Positions 2,921 through 16,153 of a stretch of 18,222 nt of DNA are shown in pieces. Each line of letters opens with the position of its first letter. The stretch's first letter is position 1. Where the stretch lies: sequence record NC_036595.1; one strand, given 5' to 3'. The position numbers and the translations under genes were made by a program. The notes below the pieces were generated by a model. The model did not search any database and was not told the origin of the DNA. It saw nothing but the letters and a program-made list of their open reading frames with translations.

Positions 2921-3377
2921 AGTCGAGATACTGGGATACGTGTTCACACAGGAGCAGCTAGAGGCGTATGCCACGCTGGTGGCCATACTGGGTGGTGCCG
3001 CGGCGACCGGGTTGTTGCTGGGCGTTATGCTAGACCTGCTGGTGCCCCGCAGGCGTAAAGAGGGTGGCGGGGACGGGGAGAGGCCGGGCGTGGAGAAGCG
3101 TGAGAAGAGTGTTGAAGAGCCGAGAATACCTGGTGTAGAGACTGCAGTTGCAGTGCACGTTGCCAGGATGGTGAAGAGCATGCTAGAGTCTGGAGAGGTA
3201 AAGATTAAACTGGTGAGGGATGATTGTGAGGGGGAGATTGTCTTCGACCTGAACACAAACGAGTTCAGATGCATAGACGAAGAGGGCAGGCTGCGGGGCC
3301 TGGGGGAGCCAGAGGCTGAGGACAGCCTAGAGGAGCTGGTGCGCGGCGGGGGTGGCAGGCGTGGCAGGCGCGGCTGA
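2913..3377 (+). CDS. Hypothetical single-pass membrane protein
   Basis: TM segment ATLVAILGGAAATGLLLGVMLDLLV followed by a charged cytoplasmic domain; operon-coupled. Confidence 0.7.
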   Translation: MAEVEILGYVFTQEQLEAYATLVAILGGAAATGLLLGVMLDLLVPRRRKEGGGDGERPGVEKREKSVEEPRIPGVETAVAVHVARMVKSMLESGEVKIKLVRDDCEGEIVFDLNTNEFRCIDEEGRLRGLGEPEAEDSLEELVRGGGGRRGRRG

Positions 3378-4314: not shown

Positions 4315-5393
4315 GGTGGGTTATATTTGTGTTTATAATGCTGGGTCTACTAGCCCAGCCCGTTGCTGGGCTGTCGATCAATTATGTGTTGTACAGTGCA
4401 GACTTCCAAGTGCCAGAGTCGGCTGTCGAGGCGCAGCAAGACGGGAGCGCCGTGCTGGAGCTTCAGTTCTATTTCCCCTGGGACTTTGACTCCGGGTTGT
4501 GGAAGAATAGGGTTAGTGTGGGTGGCTGGGATGGCATCGACGTTGAGAGGCGGTGGATAATAGGTAGCAACGATGTGTTGCTGGCTGTAAGGGCGTGGGG
4601 TTATGTGGATGGTAGTCACGGGGATCTGCTGACGTGTAACGGTGATGTTAGGAGTGCGGACTACACTACAGACCCGGATATAGGGGTGGAGTGCTATGTG
4701 AGCTACAGGCACCCTCTTAGCCAGGCTGGAGACGCTATATACCATATTATGATAGTTGTTACGCCATACGATGCTAGGTATTACCAGGTCGAGTACTACT
4801 TTGAAGGCCAGCTTATAGCCAAGTTCCTGAGGAGCCAGTACACGTACAACAATACAGAAGCCTGGCTGCTCAACACGTTTGACGATATAACAATGCGCAA
4901 TGCACTAGCCACTATAGGCCCGCCTATACCACTCTCGGGCGAGGCCAGGCTGGAGTGGAGTACAGCTATACCAGTCCCTGCTAAGACTGGCTACGAATAT
5001 AGGGTTACCGGCGGCGAGGTAGTAGAGGTTAGAGAGGGGCCGGGCGGGTACCAGCTAATGTATATACAGCCTAGTTTAACGGAGACTGCGAGCCCCTGGC
5101 GGGAATCATGCTATCCATACACGGTGACGCACGAGGGCTACGTGGGCGACACATGGACCACGCTAACCTGGACTAGGATGGAGTGTGAGACGATATACAC
5201 GACAATCTACACTGGGGAGATAATCCTCGAGGCTTACGAGCCCGGCAGTAACAGCCTCGAGGCTGTGCTGAGGCTGAACTTGCTACCCCAGGACGGCGCC
5301 GAGGGCGGTGGCAACAGGACACTAGCTCTAGTGGGGCTGGGGCTTATCGTTGCGGCGGTTGTAATGTTACTGCTTAGGGGTGGCAGGCGGTGA
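4311..5393 (+). CDS. Surface protein with signal peptide and C-terminal TM; possible ConA/LamG-like lectin domain
   Basis: Start reassigned from 4206 to GTG 4311 (GTGA overlap with the upstream stop), which gives a clean signal peptide MRWVIFVFIMLGLLAQPVAG. C-terminus EGGGNRT + TM + RGGRR. Confidence 0.75.
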   Translation: MRWVIFVFIMLGLLAQPVAGLSINYVLYSADFQVPESAVEAQQDGSAVLELQFYFPWDFDSGLWKNRVSVGGWDGIDVERRWIIGSNDVLLAVRAWGYVDGSHGDLLTCNGDVRSADYTTDPDIGVECYVSYRHPLSQAGDAIYHIMIVVTPYDARYYQVEYYFEGQLIAKFLRSQYTYNNTEAWLLNTFDDITMRNALATIGPPIPLSGEARLEWSTAIPVPAKTGYEYRVTGGEVVEVREGPGGYQLMYIQPSLTETASPWRESCYPYTVTHEGYVGDTWTTLTWTRMECETIYTTIYTGEIILEAYEPGSNSLEAVLRLNLLPQDGAEGGGNRTLALVGLGLIVAAVVMLLLRGGRR

Positions 5394-6284: not shown

Positions 6285-6287
6285 ACC

Positions 6288-6301
6288 CACCCTTTTTATC
6301 A
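6288..6301 (+). terminator. Oligo-T terminator
   Basis: CACCCTTTTTATCA; near-identical CACCTTTTTA motifs recur near 6700 and 7635. Confidence 0.55.
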
Positions 6302-6355
6302 TTAGTATAAATAAATGGGGGCGGGGTATATACCCCTATATGGAAATACATACTT

Positions 6356-6415
6356 AGATTTATTACCTCTCGTTGCTATATGTTTAACATGGCCCGTAAA
6401 ACGGTGTGTGTAAAA
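6356..6415 (+). promoter_or_regulatory. 60-bp repeated promoter, copy 1 (TATA TTTATTA at 6359, palindrome ATGTT-T-AACAT)
   Basis: 52/60 identical to copy 2 and 51/60 to copy 3 by manual alignment; directly precedes an ORF. Confidence 0.85.
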
Positions 6416-6426
6416 GGGTGGTAGAG

Positions 6427-6669
6427 ATGGAGACTGCGAGAGTCTATTTGGCTAGGAAGCTTGAGGACTGCCCCATACCGGATGAGGATGTGGCGGTAGC
6501 CTGTTTCAGGGCTGAGGTTGACGGTAAGGAAAGTTTTGCGTACTACAATGTAAGCCCGATAAACCCGCTACATGCTGATCTAATAGTGTACGATCCCCGT
6601 AGTAAAAAGCTAGTGCTGGCCGAGGAATTACCAAACATAGAGATAGTCTATACTAATGAGGACGATTAA
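6427..6669 (+). CDS. Hypothetical small acidic protein (80 aa); candidate early/anti-defence protein
   Basis: ATG 6427 after GGGTGGTAGAG (alternative GTG 6406); own promoter and terminator. Function not recognisable. Confidence 0.65.
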   Translation: METARVYLARKLEDCPIPDEDVAVACFRAEVDGKESFAYYNVSPINPLHADLIVYDPRSKKLVLAEELPNIEIVYTNEDD

Positions 6670-6675
6670 TCTCAA

Positions 6676-6735
6676 CTTTTTTATCCACAAAACTAGAAAC
6701 ACCTTTTTATCATCTTTTACCTTCTTCTTTATTCT
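6676..6735 (+). terminator. T-rich terminator region
   Basis: Several T4-T6 tracts after the 6669 stop. Confidence 0.55.
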
Positions 6736-6793
6736 TATCTATACCCCCAGTTCCCCCTTTCAACCCCATACATGTATATACCTGCTTATGCTA

Positions 6794-6853
6794 AGATTTA
6801 TTACCTTTAGTTGCTATACGTTTAACGTGGCCTGTAAAACGGTCTACGTAAAA
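6794..6853 (+). promoter_or_regulatory. 60-bp repeated promoter, copy 2 (TATA at 6797, palindrome ACGTT-T-AACGT)
   Basis: Direct alignment to 6356-6415. Confidence 0.85.
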
Positions 6854-6869
6854 TGTGGGGTGTTGTGGT

Positions 6870-7616
6870 GTGTGGAAGAGGGTATTTAGTGCAGAGTGGC
6901 CAGACCGAGTACTAATACATAGGGACATGGTTCCCCTTGAGCCCCGCGAACTTGGAGCAACCATAATATACAAAAGGCCACCCAGTATTGAAGAGGGATG
7001 TGGAGCTAAGAGGAGATACGTGATCTATACTGACTTCTTAGTCAGGGGTGGATTCAGGACTTTTCCACCGACCCAGGAGATGCTCAAGGATTTGCTAGAG
7101 GAGAAACATTTCTATGTTGTGCCACCGTTCATCCGTGACACCATTATAACTGGTGGGCACGAGTACAGAGTGAGGTTACTACCCTACGCCTACATAGTGC
7201 AATACGTATTCGGTAGAGTGGACATCTACTCGGACGGGTGGTTTGTTTTCAAGAGACACAGTCAAAGGGAGTTCAAGGCAGCGCCAGACGGTGATTATGA
7301 CGCTGTCCTGCTGAGCATAACGGCGAGCGCGCACAGCAGGACAGTTACAGCCGAGTTAGTATTGCTGGATGACTACCCACATATAAAGGAGCACGCCGTA
7401 TGCAGGATAGACTCGGTCGAGACTGCACTGGTGCTGGTACCCAAGGGTGCTAAGCTTAGATTCATAAAGAAGACGGGACGCTACAGGGGGGCACCGGTGT
7501 ATGTCCCTATGCTATTTGACGCCAGCACATTAAAGTTCAAACGCTTCCCCGAGGTTTACAGCCTCGAGCTGGCGGAAGAAGCTCTTTCAAGTCTAGACGA
7601 CGAGGAGCTGGTCTAG
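6870..7616 (+). CDS. Hypothetical protein (about 248 aa), no recognisable family
   Basis: Long open frame; preferred start GTG 6870 with GGGGTG upstream (track start 6855); follows promoter copy 2. Confidence 0.75.
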   Translation: MWKRVFSAEWPDRVLIHRDMVPLEPRELGATIIYKRPPSIEEGCGAKRRYVIYTDFLVRGGFRTFPPTQEMLKDLLEEKHFYVVPPFIRDTIITGGHEYRVRLLPYAYIVQYVFGRVDIYSDGWFVFKRHSQREFKAAPDGDYDAVLLSITASAHSRTVTAELVLLDDYPHIKEHAVCRIDSVETALVLVPKGAKLRFIKKTGRYRGAPVYVPMLFDASTLKFKRFPEVYSLELAEEALSSLDDEELV

Positions 7617-7634
7617 GCTCGCCTAAACTCAATC

Positions 7635-7682
7635 CACCTTTTTAAAGTAAATCTTTTTCTAACCCCTCTTTTCCCTGTTTTG
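7635..7682 (+). terminator. T-rich terminator region
   Basis: CACCTTTTTAAAG...TCTTTTTCT...CTTTTCCCTGTTTT after the 7616 stop. Confidence 0.55.
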
Positions 7683-7724
7683 TTATAGCCCCAAGTATAT
7701 ACTCGTATATTCATATCTGGACAA

Positions 7725-7784
7725 AGGTTTATTAACTCTCGATGCTATATGTATAACATGGCCTGTAAAACGGTGGCCGTAAGA
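7725..7784 (+). promoter_or_regulatory. 60-bp repeated promoter, copy 3 (BRE/TATA AAAGGTTTATTA, palindrome ATGT-ATA-ACAT)
   Basis: Direct alignment to copies 1 and 2; ends at the ATG of the 7784 ORF. Confidence 0.85.
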
Positions 7785-8275
7785 TGGCATACGAGGCTGG
7801 GGCCCCCGAGGCCGCGCCCCAAGCCCCCCAGGGCGTGGTTGTTGAGGGGGCTGAGGATGGGGGGCACCCCGAGTGGATAACCCTCGTTTACCGACAGCGA
7901 CACACCTGCTCTGGTAGGAGTGGGGTTAAGGAGTTCAACGTTTTTATCAATGAGCGGACGATGGAGCAAAAGCCAGCCTGGGAACTGCTCCCAGTCCTGG
8001 ACACACAATACGGTAGCCGCTGCAGCGGGGCGGTGGAGAAGCACACATCAATAGAGAAGGTTCTCGAAAAAGCTAATGAGGGTTGGACTATAGTAAAGAA
8101 CGTGCTTTACAAGTGGCATGCTGGACGGCGGATGGTAGAGGTAACATACTACCACATCCCCAGTAGAACGACGCTAGAGCATGAGAGGGATCATGACGTC
8201 GACTACCACGATAAAGTAGTATTGCCGGCTGGGAAGCTGATGAAGGTCTACAAGGAAAGGGTAGAGGTGGTGTGA
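7784..8275 (+). CDS. Hypothetical protein (163 aa)
   Basis: ATG start after promoter copy 3; GTGA-coupled to the next gene. Confidence 0.75.
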   Translation: MAYEAGAPEAAPQAPQGVVVEGAEDGGHPEWITLVYRQRHTCSGRSGVKEFNVFINERTMEQKPAWELLPVLDTQYGSRCSGAVEKHTSIEKVLEKANEGWTIVKNVLYKWHAGRRMVEVTYYHIPSRTTLEHERDHDVDYHDKVVLPAGKLMKVYKERVEVV

Positions 8276-8712
8276 TCGTGGCTAGGGCCTGCGTTGTAAA
8301 CGTGAACAACTGGATGCCCGCTTTTTTAGAGAAGCTTAGGACAGACGGGAGAATAAAGAAGTGGGAGTGGGCGGGCGGCTCGACGATTTGCTTTGAGTTT
8401 GACGGCCATATACAAATAGACGTTACAGATATGCATGATGCGGTGCCAGACTACGTGCTACGCAACAACGCTAACTACGAGACCCTTAAAGCCATATTTA
8501 AGCAGTATGTCGTGCTTAGCATAATAAACACGCTGCGTGGCGGCGTGGTTCACGGCTTCACCGACACATGGATAGAGCTGGAGAGCACCGAGAAAACCGA
8601 GGTAGTCTGTTTTAGAGTAACTAGGCAGGAGAAGGAGAGGCTGGAGAAAGAAGCAGAGGAGAGGGGCGTCAGCCTGAGCGACTACATACGCTCCCGCGTC
8701 CTCACCGATTAA
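8272..8712 (+). CDS. Two-domain protein with a C-terminal ribbon-helix-helix (CopG/MobC-like) DNA-binding domain
   Basis: C-terminal KTEVVCFRVTRQEKERLEKEAEERGVSLSDYIRSRVL fits the RHH pattern (alternating strand, helix A, G-x-S-x-S-x-x-I-R helix B). Confidence 0.8.
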   Translation: MIVARACVVNVNNWMPAFLEKLRTDGRIKKWEWAGGSTICFEFDGHIQIDVTDMHDAVPDYVLRNNANYETLKAIFKQYVVLSIINTLRGGVVHGFTDTWIELESTEKTEVVCFRVTRQEKERLEKEAEERGVSLSDYIRSRVLTD

Positions 8713-8796
8713 TTTAAGTGAAAGTCGGAGAGTAAGCTCAGTCCGCTCCCTCAAGGCACATCCCATGAACAATTTTTAAAGTAAGAAATAAATAGG

Positions 8797-8901: not shown

Positions 8902-8945
8902 CTCTGTTAACACTTTGTTAACACTGTTAACAATTGTTAACAGAG
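8902..8945. repeat. Four phased palindromic TGTTAACA repeats bounded by an 11-bp inverted repeat; candidate origin or operator array
   Basis: TGTTAACA at 8905, 8916, 8925, 8935; CTCTGTTAACA (8902-8912) is the reverse complement of TGTTAACAGAG (8935-8945). Confidence 0.85.
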
Positions 8946-8956
8946 ATTGTGAGAGA

Positions 8957-9358
8957 ATGGTTAGAGAGAGTAGAGTTGTAGGTTTTAGAGTTAGTAGGGC
9001 GGCGTGGCTGCTTTATAATGAGGCTTTGAGCTACAGCGATAAAGAGGTGCTTAAGTATGTTGTCGAGGGTTTGATACTGGCTCTGGCTAGGGAGAGGATG
9101 GGTGGTCTCCCCTGCGGCGATATTTTGGATAAAAGGCTCTCCGCCTCAGCCATTAGGTTTACTGGCCAGGGCTTTGTTAACTTCAATGTGTCTGTCAACG
9201 TGAACGAGAATAAAAACGAGAATAGGGTGAATGTCGATCTGGCCGCTCTGGCCGAGCTTGTCGACAGGCTGTACCACATTATGAAGAGTAACCCAAGCAC
9301 GCCGCCGCTCCAGCTCAAGCTGGTAGAGGATATACGCAGGCATTTGAAGACGAACTAG
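8957..9358 (+). CDS. Hypothetical protein with a possible N-terminal RHH-like DNA-binding region (start uncertain: 8816, 8855 or 8957)
   Basis: MVRESRVVGFRVSRAAWLLYNE resembles an RHH strand-helix. The upstream in-frame extension is low-complexity and coincides with the repeat array. Confidence 0.6.
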   Translation: MVRESRVVGFRVSRAAWLLYNEALSYSDKEVLKYVVEGLILALARERMGGLPCGDILDKRLSASAIRFTGQGFVNFNVSVNVNENKNENRVNVDLAALAELVDRLYHIMKSNPSTPPLQLKLVEDIRRHLKTN

Positions 9359-12496: not shown

Positions 12497-13512
12497 CCCG
12501 GGTTTCCCCAGCACGGGCTGGGGCAGGCGCCGTGGTGTTCTACAGGGTCAAGCGGGTCAAGGGCAGGTACTACCTTGTCAAGGAGTGGTGGGACCCGGGG
12601 TTGAAGAAGAAGATCACCAAGTCGATAGGCCCCTGTGAATGGCTAGAGGGCCTCAGCGAAGAATACAGGGAGAGGACGCGGGGTACTAGGGGCCCCGCCC
12701 CTAGAGTGGTGCCGCGGCCGGGATTTGAACCCGGGTCACGGGCTCGAAAGGCCCGCAGTAGGCGGGGCGCCCAGCCTACCGTTTCCCCAGGCAACGGGTC
12801 CACCGTGGAGCCCTACTACAGGCGGCTATGGGAAACCTGGTGCCTGGAGAGGGGCACAAGCCCCGAGACCTGTGCCAGGTACTCGGGCTACCTGCAAAAG
12901 CCCCTGGACCCAGGCAACCGCTGGAGCGCCAAGGCCTGGAAGCTCTACTACAAGTGGCGGTGCGAGCTGGGGGACCAGACGGCCTGCGAGGACTACAAGA
13001 GGGTGAAGGTGCCGCAGGCCGGGGCGGACAAGCGGGTGCCAAGCCTAGAGGCAATACTAGACAGTATAGAGAGGGCGGGCCCCTACCGCATAGTCTACAT
13101 TATCCTGCTAGAGTCTGGGCTCAGGCTGGTAGAGGCGGTGAAGCTTATCCGCGAGTACGATAGGCTGGAGTGCACCAGGCTGGACGGCTACACCCGCTGC
13201 CTGCTGGGCTACACGCGGGGGAAGAAGAGGGCGCTCTGGGGCTACCATATCACGCCTGTAGAGCCTATGGAAGACCTGACGGACAGAAGGGTGACAAGCT
13301 ACGCAGAGAAGTACAGGCTAACCCCGCCAAAGTACATTCGAAAGTTCGTGGCCACTAAGATGGCCGAGCTAGGCGTTCCCTTCGAGGTTATAGACTTCAT
13401 ACAGGGCAGGACGCCTAGAAGCGTGTTGCTCCAGCACTACGCCCAGCTACTGGGCGTGGCGGACAGGGAATACGCCAAGTATGCTAGGTGGCTCAGGGGG
13501 TGGATGGGGTGA
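12493..13512 (+). CDS. int: SSV-type tyrosine recombinase (integrase), intact form
   Basis: N-terminal YRVKRVKGRYYLVK domain; antisense-tRNA peptide VPRPGFEPGSRARKAR; catalytic motifs ESGLRLVEA (R), KKR, KYIRKF (K-x-x-R), FIQGR and QHYA (Y). Confidence 0.95.
   Translation: MTRVSPARAGAGAVVFYRVKRVKGRYYLVKEWWDPGLKKKITKSIGPCEWLEGLSEEYRERTRGTRGPAPRVVPRPGFEPGSRARKARSRRGAQPTVSPGNGSTVEPYYRRLWETWCLERGTSPETCARYSGYLQKPLDPGNRWSAKAWKLYYKWRCELGDQTACEDYKRVKVPQAGADKRVPSLEAILDSIERAGPYRIVYIILLESGLRLVEAVKLIREYDRLECTRLDGYTRCLLGYTRGKKRALWGYHITPVEPMEDLTDRRVTSYAEKYRLTPPKYIRKFVATKMAELGVPFEVIDFIQGRTPRSVLLQHYAQLLGVADREYAKYARWLRGWMG
12707..12757 (-). other. attP core: 3' half of tRNA-Glu(TTC) including CCA, embedded in the integrase gene (not a complete tRNA)
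   Basis: Reverse complement TGCGGGCCTTTCGAGCCCGTGACCCGGGTTCAAATCCCGGCCGCGGCACCA gives anticodon stem CGGGC/GCCCG, loop CT-TTC-GA, T-arm CCGGG-TTCAAAT-CCCGG, 3' acceptor strand and CCA. No D-arm or 5' acceptor strand is present. Confidence 0.93.
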
Positions 13513-13703
13513 GGCTTGAGGTCCTGGTGCTGCAAAATCCTGACCATAAAACACTGCGTAGGCTGCTCAGGCGGCATAACGGCAGGATACTGGCTGTAGC
13601 CCTTGTCGTCGAGGTCGAGAGCAAAAAACAGGTTTCAGCTCTTGCGAGGCACTATAGGCTTAGGCCTCTCCCCGTCCCCGCCACCCTCTTTATCGAGCAC
13701 TAG
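13509..13703 (+). CDS. Small basic hypothetical protein (64 aa)
   Basis: Start reassigned to GTG 13509 (GTGA overlap with the integrase stop, GGGGG upstream); converges on the ATPase gene. Confidence 0.55.
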   Translation: MRLEVLVLQNPDHKTLRRLLRRHNGRILAVALVVEVESKKQVSALARHYRLRPLPVPATLFIEH

Positions 13704-15376: not shown

Positions 15377-16153
15377 CTAGAATCCTATGATATCGTCTAG
15401 GTGCTCCAGCTCATACCTGGCTACATCGTCTAGCTCCCTAGCGACCATCTTCTCCCACTCGCTGTCCTCATACATCCTACTGATGTACTTCCACCTCTCC
15501 AAGTCTTCCTTGGCTATCTCCTCTAGCGTCTTACCCAGGGCTTCCCTAACTAGCCCCTTGGCATAGTGGTAGCCTAGAGACCAGTCCACTAGCTCTTTCC
15601 AGTCGTATTGATACGGGTCTATACCCTTCTCCTTAGCTCTGTCGTGTATTGCCTTCGCTAGTGCTAGCGCCATTATATATGTCCAGACCCTATCCTTTCC
15701 CCTCTTGTAACGCTTGGGTATCCATCTCCAGATGTCCTCTGCTAGGCTCCTAACAGCGGGGCTCCTGGCCCAGGTCTGCCTAGCCCTCTTCAGGGCCTTA
15801 GCCAGGGCCTTGGCTGTTATGGCTTTTACAGCCTTAGACTCGACCTTCTTACCGGCTCCCAGCTTCTTGGTTACCTTCTTCGCCTGGCTCTTGCTGGCCT
15901 TACTAACCTCTCGCTTTAGCCTTCTAACAACCTTTATCACGTCGTGGGTGTGTCTCCAGGGGCCCCTGCCTACCTTCTTCCCCCTGCGCCTGTCCAGGTG
16001 TGGGGTGTGCTTCGATATGTGGCTCCTAGAGCGGGCGTAGTAATGGCCCGGGCCAGTCCACGCCTTCTCGCACGCCCTCTTACTGTACCCCCTCTCCTCG
16101 CACCACTTGAGCAGTTGTTTCTTCGTCTTGAAGAAGTAGAGCTTGGTTACCAC
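15377..16153 (-). CDS. Highly basic K/R-rich protein; candidate nucleoprotein
   Basis: Very K/R/A-rich first ~140 aa (histone H1-like KKVTKKLGAGKKVESKAVKA), acidic helical C-terminus; directly downstream of the VP2-like gene. Confidence 0.7.
   Translation of the reverse strand: MVTKLYFFKTKKQLLKWCEERGYSKRACEKAWTGPGHYYARSRSHISKHTPHLDRRRGKKVGRGPWRHTHDVIKVVRRLKREVSKASKSQAKKVTKKLGAGKKVESKAVKAITAKALAKALKRARQTWARSPAVRSLAEDIWRWIPKRYKRGKDRVWTYIMALALAKAIHDRAKEKGIDPYQYDWKELVDWSLGYHYAKGLVREALGKTLEEIAKEDLERWKYISRMYEDSEWEKMVARELDDVARYELEHLDDIIGF

Follow-up and report, generated by a model that had tools for sequence, protein, structure and literature searches.

The window analysed here, 18,222 bp long, is the complete circular genome of Aeropyrum globular virus 1 (AGV1), with 100% identity to LC208019.1/NC_036595.1 over the full length. 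We describe a locus immediately after the structural gene block, in which three copies of one promoter, each carrying a putative operator, precede three tandem units: open reading frame (ORF) 12, ORF13 and an ORF14–ORF15 operon. GenBank labels ORF12, ORF13 and ORF14 as hypothetical proteins and ORF15 as a putative ribbon–helix–helix (RHH) DNA-binding protein. The features, in genome order, are given below (BRE, B recognition element; SD, Shine–Dalgarno sequence).

6288..6297, + strand: CACCCTTTTT, an oligo-T site of terminator type that follows ORF11, where the structural gene block ends
6323..6336, no strand: GGGGTATATACCCC, a perfect 14-nt palindrome with core GTATATAC, upstream of copy 1
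6353..6421, + strand: candidate promoter–operator copy 1, with BRE/TATA TTTATTA (6359–6365), heptads GTTTAAC (6382–6388), GTAAAAC (6396–6402) and GTAAAAG (6410–6416), and SD GGGTGG (6416–6421)
6427..6669, + strand: ORF12, 80 aa, acidic (pI 4.4), soluble, a true ORFan
6677..6709, + strand: two oligo-T sites after ORF12, T6 (6677–6682) and CACCTTTTTA (6700–6709)
6774..6781, no strand: GTATATAC palindrome, upstream of copy 2
6791..6862, + strand: candidate promoter–operator copy 2, with TATA (6797–6803), heptads (6820–6826, 6834–6840 and 6848–6854) and SD GGGGTG (6857–6862)
6870..7616, + strand: ORF13, 248 aa from GTG 6870
7635..7658, + strand: two oligo-T sites after ORF13, CACCTTTTTAAAGTAA and then T5 (7654–7658)
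7695..7702, no strand: GTATATAC palindrome, upstream of copy 3
7722..7786, + strand: candidate promoter–operator copy 3, at the position held by this promoter in relatives, with TATA (7728–7734), heptads GTATAAC (7751–7757), GTAAAAC (7765–7771) and GTAAGAT (7779–7785), and SD GGTGG (7772–7776)
7784..8275, + strand: ORF14, 163 aa, soluble, two conserved cysteines
8272..8712, + strand: ORF15, 146 aa, the conserved anchor gene
8773..8777, + strand: oligo-T site within TTTTTAAAGTAA, closing the ORF14–ORF15 operon

A repeat search recovered one three-copy family in the genome, at 6350–6449, 6788–6887 and 7719–7818. Taken as 60-nt frames starting at 6356, 6794 and 7725, the copies show pairwise identities of 52/60, 51/60 and 48/60 (80–87%), which reproduces the near-identical 60-bp elements, and the first two of these values, given in a preliminary description of this DNA. 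The repeat is real, but the conserved module is larger than the 60 bp then described, and includes an upstream GTATATAC palindrome that belongs to each copy. This palindrome occurs four times in the genome against 0.28 expected; three of the occurrences lie upstream of the repeats, at distances from the TATA box of 33, 23 and 33 nt for copies 1, 2 and 3. Each copy continues with a purine-rich stretch and then the BRE/TATA element TTTATTA, within AAGATTTATTA, in which the BRE has A at −3 in all three copies and C at −6. Sixteen nucleotides after the TATA box come three heptads of GTWWAAC type with an exact 14-nt period, GT(T/A)TAAC, GTAAAAC and GTAA(A/G)A(G/T), placed around the predicted start site. 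The SD of each copy is of the GGTG type, which also precedes most AGV1 genes.

In archaea, the TATA box is centred ∼26 nt upstream of the transcription start. This rule would put the starts near 6389, 6827 and 7758, and the heptads at about −7/−1, +8/+14 and +22/+28 relative to them. Such positions around the start are typical sites at which archaeal repressors block polymerase recruitment. Short ORFs (11, 20 and 40 aa) open at a conserved ATG/GTG on the predicted start site; these we rejected as genes because they show no conservation beyond the repeat or in relatives.

The module is specific to the three sites. Genome-wide, a 30-nt degenerate core matches only these three, with 0.00 matches expected from shuffles, as does the 16-nt core TGGCCYGTAAAACGGT, with 0.23 expected. 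The heptad GTAAAAC has no occurrence in the 18-kb genome outside the three copies, and the heptad pair GWWWAAC-N7-GWWWAAC is likewise found in AGV1 only within them (0.07 expected at one mismatch). Pattern and profile scans found the module in none of the other AGV1 intergenic promoter regions. A stretch inside ORF8 (5041–5105) holds the blocks GGGCGGG, GTATATAC, GTTTAAC and GGAGACTGCGAG in the same order as the copy-1 region; in a gap-tolerant alignment with that region it was outscored by 15 of 2000 random windows, and the similarity may be a recombination footprint or chance.

Oligo-T tracts are an intrinsic termination signal of archaeal RNA polymerase and need no hairpin. On the plus strand, 6 of the 12 runs of five or more T fall in the spacers after ORF11, ORF12 (two), ORF13 (two) and ORF15. 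The motif CACC(C)TTTTTA is present at 6288, 6700 and 7635 and nowhere else in the genome, so that one such site does precede each promoter copy, as had been claimed. The 12-mer TTTTTAAAGTAA, at 7639–7650 and 8773–8784, ends both the ORF13 unit and the ORF14–ORF15 operon, and CACCYTTTTTATCAT is common to the sites after ORF11 and ORF12; the existence of these two terminator types suggests that whole promoter–gene–terminator units were copied. A scan for promoters and terminators of bacterial type detected no terminator hairpin at these tracts; such a scan carries no information for a virus of archaea. Of the three stand-alone cassettes initially proposed, ORF12 and ORF13 are indeed separate units, but the third is a two-gene operon. 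The block is also AT-richer than its flanks, as stated in that proposal, with a GC content of 0.41–0.52 in windows along it against 0.55–0.64; ORF12 (0.469) and ORF13 (0.507) are both AT-richer than the rest of the genome.

We then compared AGV1 with its relatives, metagenomic contigs L022 to L027, which were found by protein search (five through ORF15 homologues and one through an ORF14 homologue). Their source samples are JGI 3300003981, 3300034049 and 3300006076, ENA ERZ23491061 and ERZ23495180, and GCA_027075365.1. Common to the promoters of these relatives are the TATA box, one heptad where transcription would start, and more heptads that follow with a spacing of 14 nt or, occasionally, 15 nt. 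The sequence and phase of the heptads are kept, while the 7-nt spacers between them vary freely. The pair GWWWAAC-N7-GWWWAAC recurs in L022, L024, L025, L026 (three times) and L027, with one match among the control loci; in L023 the pair is degenerate and visible only in the aligned promoter layout. An nhmmer profile built from seven promoters of the relatives, with AGV1 left out, was searched in 159 kb of sequence. Its top matches were exactly the three AGV1 copies (E = 3.7e-6 for copy 1, 3.2e-5 for copy 3 and 7e-3 for copy 2); it gave no further match in AGV1, and all control loci scored lower. In L026 the module drives the ORF15 homologue directly, with no gene between, and a divergent 71-aa ORFan there has its own leader, TTTATTA-N17-GTAAAAC-N7-GTAAAAC-GGGGTG.

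In IMG/VR, the exact core TAACNTGGCCNGTAAAACGG and an ORF15 profile each matched AGV1 alone. Two other sets of matches were set aside: 19 matches to TAACNTGGCCNGTAAAACGG in 185,579 species genomes and the JGI metagenomes, which are bacterial chance matches without the flanking module, and three AT-rich matches in IMG/VR to a TATA plus two-heptad pattern, which we took as chance. The AGV1 locus is a real, non-chance feature. It is not mentioned in the sole paper on AGV1, a bioRxiv preprint (10.1101/2021.04.21.440749), from whose text the promoters and the three-copy repeat are absent.

The genes that lie between promoter and ORF15 homologue differ in nearly every relative. The preliminary description had named invariant gene content across relatives as an outcome that would speak against it; this outcome was not found, and the comparison favours that description. 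L023 (8.9 kb) is syntenic with AGV1 over the structural genes and has homologues of ORF1, 3, 4, 6, 7, 9, 10 and 11; between its ORF11 and ORF15 homologues lies one unrelated gene of 92 aa. Before the ORF15 homologue there is a 156-aa ORF14-like gene in L022, genes of 98 and 101 aa in L024, one of 140 aa in L027 and two of 142 aa each in L025, the second being an ORF14 relative with 22% identity. Apart from the ORF14 family, the slot proteins are mutually unrelated; all are soluble, several are small and acidic, and those of the relatives have no Pfam match. The presence of different genes at the slot in relatives points to an accessory locus, possibly of anti-defence genes.

The most direct view of exchange comes from L022 and L024, whose ORF15 homologues are 86% identical. 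The two contigs are 84% identical from the upstream region through the promoter to about nucleotide 50 of the gene, and 87% identical again from just before ORF15; between these lie 406 and 561 nt, respectively, of unrelated sequence. On alignment, this one case shows a clean cassette replacement: its left edge follows the promoter and ∼50 nt of coding sequence, and its right edge lies at the region where ORF15 starts. An earlier suggestion that cassettes are gained or lost by recombination at the repeats agrees with this replacement, but is supported only in part because the mapped left breakpoint lies within the gene, ∼50 nt inside the coding region, and not in the promoter.

Two other observations were made on these contigs. 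A 39-nt repeat in L025 (58–96 and 678–716; 79% identical; GCATGTATATWAATAAATA...) precedes both of its cassettes and resembles AGTATAAATAAATGGGG upstream of AGV1 copy 1 (6305–6321). In L023, positions 6679–7449 hold a homologue (51% identity) of the AGV1 ‘putative glutamyl-tRNA reductase’ (15377–16153, minus strand); it sits within the structural block, between the ORF9 and ORF10 homologues, whereas the AGV1 counterpart is on the opposite strand at the other side of the genome, indicating a rearrangement between the relatives.

ORF15 is the candidate autoregulator of the locus. Its C-terminal RHH domain (Pfam NikA-like, 4.5e-10; PDB match 2ba3) agrees with the earlier observation that the last unit ends in an RHH gene. 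The protein is recognisable in this part only, and its N-terminal domain of ∼100 aa has no recognisable fold. Homologues with 48–70% identity occur in six contigs, behind unrelated upstream genes. The RHH beta-strand CFRVT, the DNA-reading strand, is invariant in seven homologues, as is the heptad core, and we propose that ORF15 binds the heptads. The start of ORF15 is probably GTG 8278 and not the annotated GTG 8272, since MARAC... is present in all six homologues and an SD, GAGGTG, lies at 8264–8269.

The cargo genes ORF12, ORF13 and ORF14 show no mutual similarity at E below 1. They are thus unrelated to each other, as first reported, and we rejected the idea that they are diverged paralogues. 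They have no match in Pfam, PHROG, NCBIfam, PADLOC or the PDB sequences, and none belongs to a known anti-CRISPR (Acr), defence or anti-defence family in the general libraries searched, which did not include a dedicated Acr library. Unlike the products of the structural block, the cargo proteins have no transmembrane segments, and several are small and acidic. All three had been called ORFans. This holds for ORF12, which has no homologue among 5.8e9 proteins, but ORF13 and ORF14 each have a few metagenomic homologues; neither had a tblastn match in 50,697 phage and archaeal-virus records.

For ORF13, GTG 6870 (248 aa) is a more probable start than the annotated ATG 6927 (229 aa), because GGGGTG lies 7 nt upstream of the GTG and homology begins at residue 8. 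It belongs to a small unannotated family with seven distant homologues (E = 6e-8 to 6e-4), characterised by the motifs GCGAxH, RGGFR, HSVxSRS, CxxDS and PPYRG and an acidic C-terminal -E-E-[IVL]-V. Its AlphaFold model is beta-rich, with a predicted local distance difference test score (pLDDT) of 78.7 and a predicted template modelling score of 0.77; a Foldseek search of PDB and BFVD returned only its own BFVD entry, apart from a few partial matches below threshold to small rudivirus and lipothrixvirus proteins that are uncharacterised. ORF14 belongs to a tiny unannotated family; in L022 (62% identity) and L025 (22% identity) its homologue is the gene just before the ORF15 homologue, and the weak ORF14 model (pLDDT 64) gave no fold match. 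One ORF13 homologue lies in another integrase-bearing element, L030, behind an element repeated within that contig (63–93 and 666–696; 31 nt, 90% identical). L030 also has a palindrome, GTTTAC-N6-GTAAAC (624–641 and 779–796), reminiscent of the AGV1 heptads.

The model that we favour is an RHH regulon under autoregulation, whose accessory slot is hypervariable. In AGV1-like viruses, the module would originally have been the promoter of the RHH gene ORF15, with foreign genes inserted between the two; in AGV1 it would have been copied twice more, creating two extra stand-alone units. On a repressor-free genome the promoter would fire strongly. ORF15 made from the third unit would then bind the heptads as RHH dimers and block RNA polymerase recruitment at all three promoters. 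Such negative feedback would give a burst followed by shut-off, and would place the variable cargo under a single regulator. The slot, located between structural module and ORF15, would exchange small, soluble, often acidic and unrelated proteins, which are most probably host-interaction proteins and plausibly anti-defence proteins. We put the probability of this regulatory model as a whole at roughly 0.55. That at least one cargo gene acts in anti-defence is a more tentative proposition, drawn from analogy, and we lean against it. The name ‘early anti-defence island’, used in the preliminary description, takes both the early timing and the function from analogy, and is reasonable but unproven. 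The structural side of that description is borne out by the sequence and by the relatives.

Several points weigh against the regulatory model. The predicted start site, timing and repressor derive from sequence and analogy. As the relatives were retrieved through ORF15, the search itself contributes part of the link between that gene and the promoter. At least one further RHH protein is encoded by AGV1, the CopG-like ORF21, and the heptads could just as well be bound by a host factor. Their 14-bp spacing places successive heptads on different faces of the helix, an atypical layout for an RHH operator, and the C at BRE −6 departs from the G of the strong-promoter rule (PMC11065993). As for the cargo, ORF12–14 resemble none of the Acr, defence or anti-defence families searched, and the ORF13 and ORF14 folds are uninformative. 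Finally, ORF14 adjoins ORF15 in three of seven elements; rather than cargo open to exchange, it may be a fixed partner.

The same DNA anatomy could serve another timing and purpose, namely a carrier-state (lysogeny) switch like that of SSV1 F55. ORF15 would here be a maintenance repressor silencing three inducible early promoters, and the cargo would be induction or takeover genes, or moron-like superinfection-exclusion genes. The biology of AGV1 is in keeping with this: it is a temperate or carrier-state virus with an integrase of the Sulfolobus spindle-shaped virus (SSV) type, is kept in the carrier host (A. pernix YK1-12-2013) at ∼1e-3 copies per host genome and rises to 9.5–26 copies with Tris-acetate (10.1101/2021.04.21.440749). 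In addition, the units resemble morons in having their own promoter, their own terminator and a deviant composition, and in being inserted between genes that are nearly adjacent in a relative. However, a carrier-state repressor normally has its own constitutive transcript, as Tlys in SSV1, whereas ORF15 sits behind the very promoter to be silenced, which fits Aca-type feedback better. By analogy the switch is tenable, but we consider it unlikely, as regards both ORF15 as maintenance repressor and the cargo that it would control.

The remaining alternatives do less well. The heptads might not be an operator at all but a generic initiator and 5′ leader (an AT-rich start region plus SD), so that the locus would be a strong promoter recently duplicated in front of fast-evolving, possibly dispensable ORFs. 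In an unrelated contig, L028, the arrangement TTTTTATA-N17-TATAACATG precedes an ORF13 homologue, so the TATAAC at the start site may indeed be generic. The confinement of GTAAAAC and the module to the three AGV1 sites argues otherwise, and the retention of heptads and 14-nt phase with free spacers reads as the signature of a protein-binding site; we find this alternative improbable, in its account of the heptads and of the ORFs alike. Even less probable is that ORF14–ORF15 form a toxin–antitoxin or addiction pair, with ORF15 as RHH antitoxin and autorepressor. The two genes are tightly coupled (ORF14 stop at 8273–8275, ORF15 start at 8272 or 8278), the ORF15 RHH domain has weak RelB-type and DUF1778-type similarity, and ORF14 homologues adjoin ORF15 homologues in L022 and L025. 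Nevertheless, ORF14 has no toxin, PADLOC or Pfam match, so that the recognisable toxin partner obligatory in a type II system was not found here, and the ORF15 homologue stands alone in L026 and beside unrelated partners in L023, L024 and L027. The idea that the 3′ half of the repeat acts as RNA, a 5′-untranslated-region element for translation or stability with, for example, a GUAAAAC-binding protein on either side of the SD, can claim that heptads 2 and 3 would be transcribed and flank the SD, that the last heptad of the relatives lies between SD and start codon and that some Aca proteins exert RNA-level control (PMC13551039), but was judged very unlikely given no Rfam match, a leader consensus fold of −4 kcal/mol with one compensatory pair among three sequences, and a heptad 1 upstream of the predicted start.

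Some features outside the locus were also recorded. Directly upstream of ORF16 (start 8957) are four GTTAACA boxes (8906–8942) spaced 11, 9 and 10 nt apart; elsewhere in the genome this box has one copy, on the minus strand at 9181. At its N-terminus ORF16 has VVGFRVS, which is similar to the ORF15 RHH beta-strand CFRVT, with a weak hhalign score (E = 0.08); ORF16 and its boxes may be a second pair of RHH protein and operator. A perfect 30-nt inverted repeat, TAAAGAGGGTGGCGGGGACGGGGAGAGGCC, is present at 3056–3085 and 13663–13692, 10.6 kb apart. One arm lies within ORF6 and the other at the 3′ end of the ORF at 13509–13703, and the flanks are non-homologous; a recombination site and a duplicated protospacer-sized segment are both possibilities. 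Inside the integrase gene, a tRNA-Glu-like segment (12709–12767) is 91–97% identical to the integrase/att region of many Sulfolobus spindle-shaped viruses, and was previously recorded by the AGV1 authors as an SSV-type att site (10.1101/2021.04.21.440749).

Few archaeal-virus anti-defence proteins have been characterised, and the studies cited on them cover Sulfolobales viruses only; the AGV1 locus offers three short candidates, and about eight more from relatives, in an Aeropyrum virus. Its conserved putative operator and candidate regulator are open to simple binding and reporter assays, and ORF15 with the heptad motif could be used as bait for further accessory genes in hydrothermal metagenomes. 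AGV1 also multiplies despite a perfectly matching CRISPR spacer in its host (10.1101/2021.04.21.440749), and the locus provides a testable explanation for this replication. A more far-reaching proposal, which we regard as doubtful, is that the module and its RHH anchor are the archaeal counterpart of acr–aca loci and of early promoter–stem-loop (PeSL) cassettes: a self-regulated ‘landing pad’ that would capture ORFans and exchange them by recombination, with at least one of ORF12–14 inhibiting the type I-A/III-B CRISPR systems of Aeropyrum or another defence. A defence inhibitor among these three would, if real, explain why AGV1 multiplies in the face of the matching spacer.

The known systems closest to this locus include the anti-defence gene (ADG) loci of Sulfolobales viruses, in which a shared regulatory sequence marks early and anti-defence genes (Bhoobalan-Chitty et al. 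2024; PMC11065993). That study matches the background of the preliminary description, that archaeal viruses place anti-defence genes behind shared promoters; neither AGV1 nor any Aeropyrum virus appears in it or its supplements. ADG loci, like AGV1, consist of single genes with their own promoter, and have a virus-specific sequence around the BRE/TATA, mostly small cargo without homologues and a DNA-binding regulator under the same motif. The separate units of AGV1 are evident from the oligo-T sites after ORF11, ORF12, ORF13 and ORF15 and the promoter before each unit, and its promoters share 80–87% identity over 60 nt by pairwise comparison. The two differ in host (Sulfolobales as against Aeropyrum, of the Desulfurococcales), in the two-gene operon that forms the third AGV1 unit, and in the regulator, a winged helix–turn–helix protein (Aca8) as against a 146-aa protein with a C-terminal RHH domain. 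The 14-bp-phased triple heptad downstream of the TATA box is also unlike ADG loci. The strong ADG promoter has a TTTAWATA-like TATA box with BRE G at −6 and A at −3, whereas AGV1 has TTTATTA with C at −6 and A at −3; this rule was derived for Sulfolobales and not for Aeropyrum.

In acr–aca loci, the RHH-type protein Aca14 represses its own and a neighbouring operon (PMC13551039). Shared with AGV1 are an operon that has variable genes first and, as its 3′-most gene, a small conserved one for a DNA-binding protein (in AGV1, ORF15), and a candidate motif that overlaps the core promoter and is repeated at the promoters of the regulator and of its neighbours. Inverted repeats over a bacterial −10 element form the Aca14 sites, while the candidate AGV1 sites are direct heptads spanning an archaeal start; ORF15 has the extra N-terminal domain of ∼100 aa, and is likened to Aca14 by domain and layout only. 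Since no AGV1 gene is a known or demonstrated Acr (with no dedicated Acr library searched), membership of the acr–aca class is not established. SSV1 F55 (PMC9608457) is likewise an RHH protein of a temperate crenarchaeal virus. Its short site is present in several copies in several promoters, including its own, much as the AGV1 heptads, as candidate sites, are repeated, and such promoters head a variable gene pool in both viruses. F55 differs in having 55 aa, its own transcript, Tlys, and an 11-nt site, and the likeness to ORF15 is again one of domain and layout only.

Lastly, the PeSL cassettes of T4-type phages (PMC2839356, PMC4122927) and lambdoid morons also place a repeated promoter–terminator between ORFans. 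As with the AGV1 group, PeSLs mark a hyperplastic region in which relatives differ by replaced DNA between conserved elements. In AGV1, a repeated promoter and terminator flank non-core ORFs of deviant composition, and within-contig repeated upstream elements are found before consecutive genes in L025 and L030. AGV1 differs from the PeSLs in its oligo-T sites without a stem-loop, its BRE/TATA elements and the presence of only three copies, and the one left breakpoint mapped, between L022 and L024, lies ∼50 nt inside the gene. By analogy, then, the logic of the AGV1 locus appears to match that of four described systems: ADG sequences, acr–aca loci, SSV1 F55 and PeSLs.

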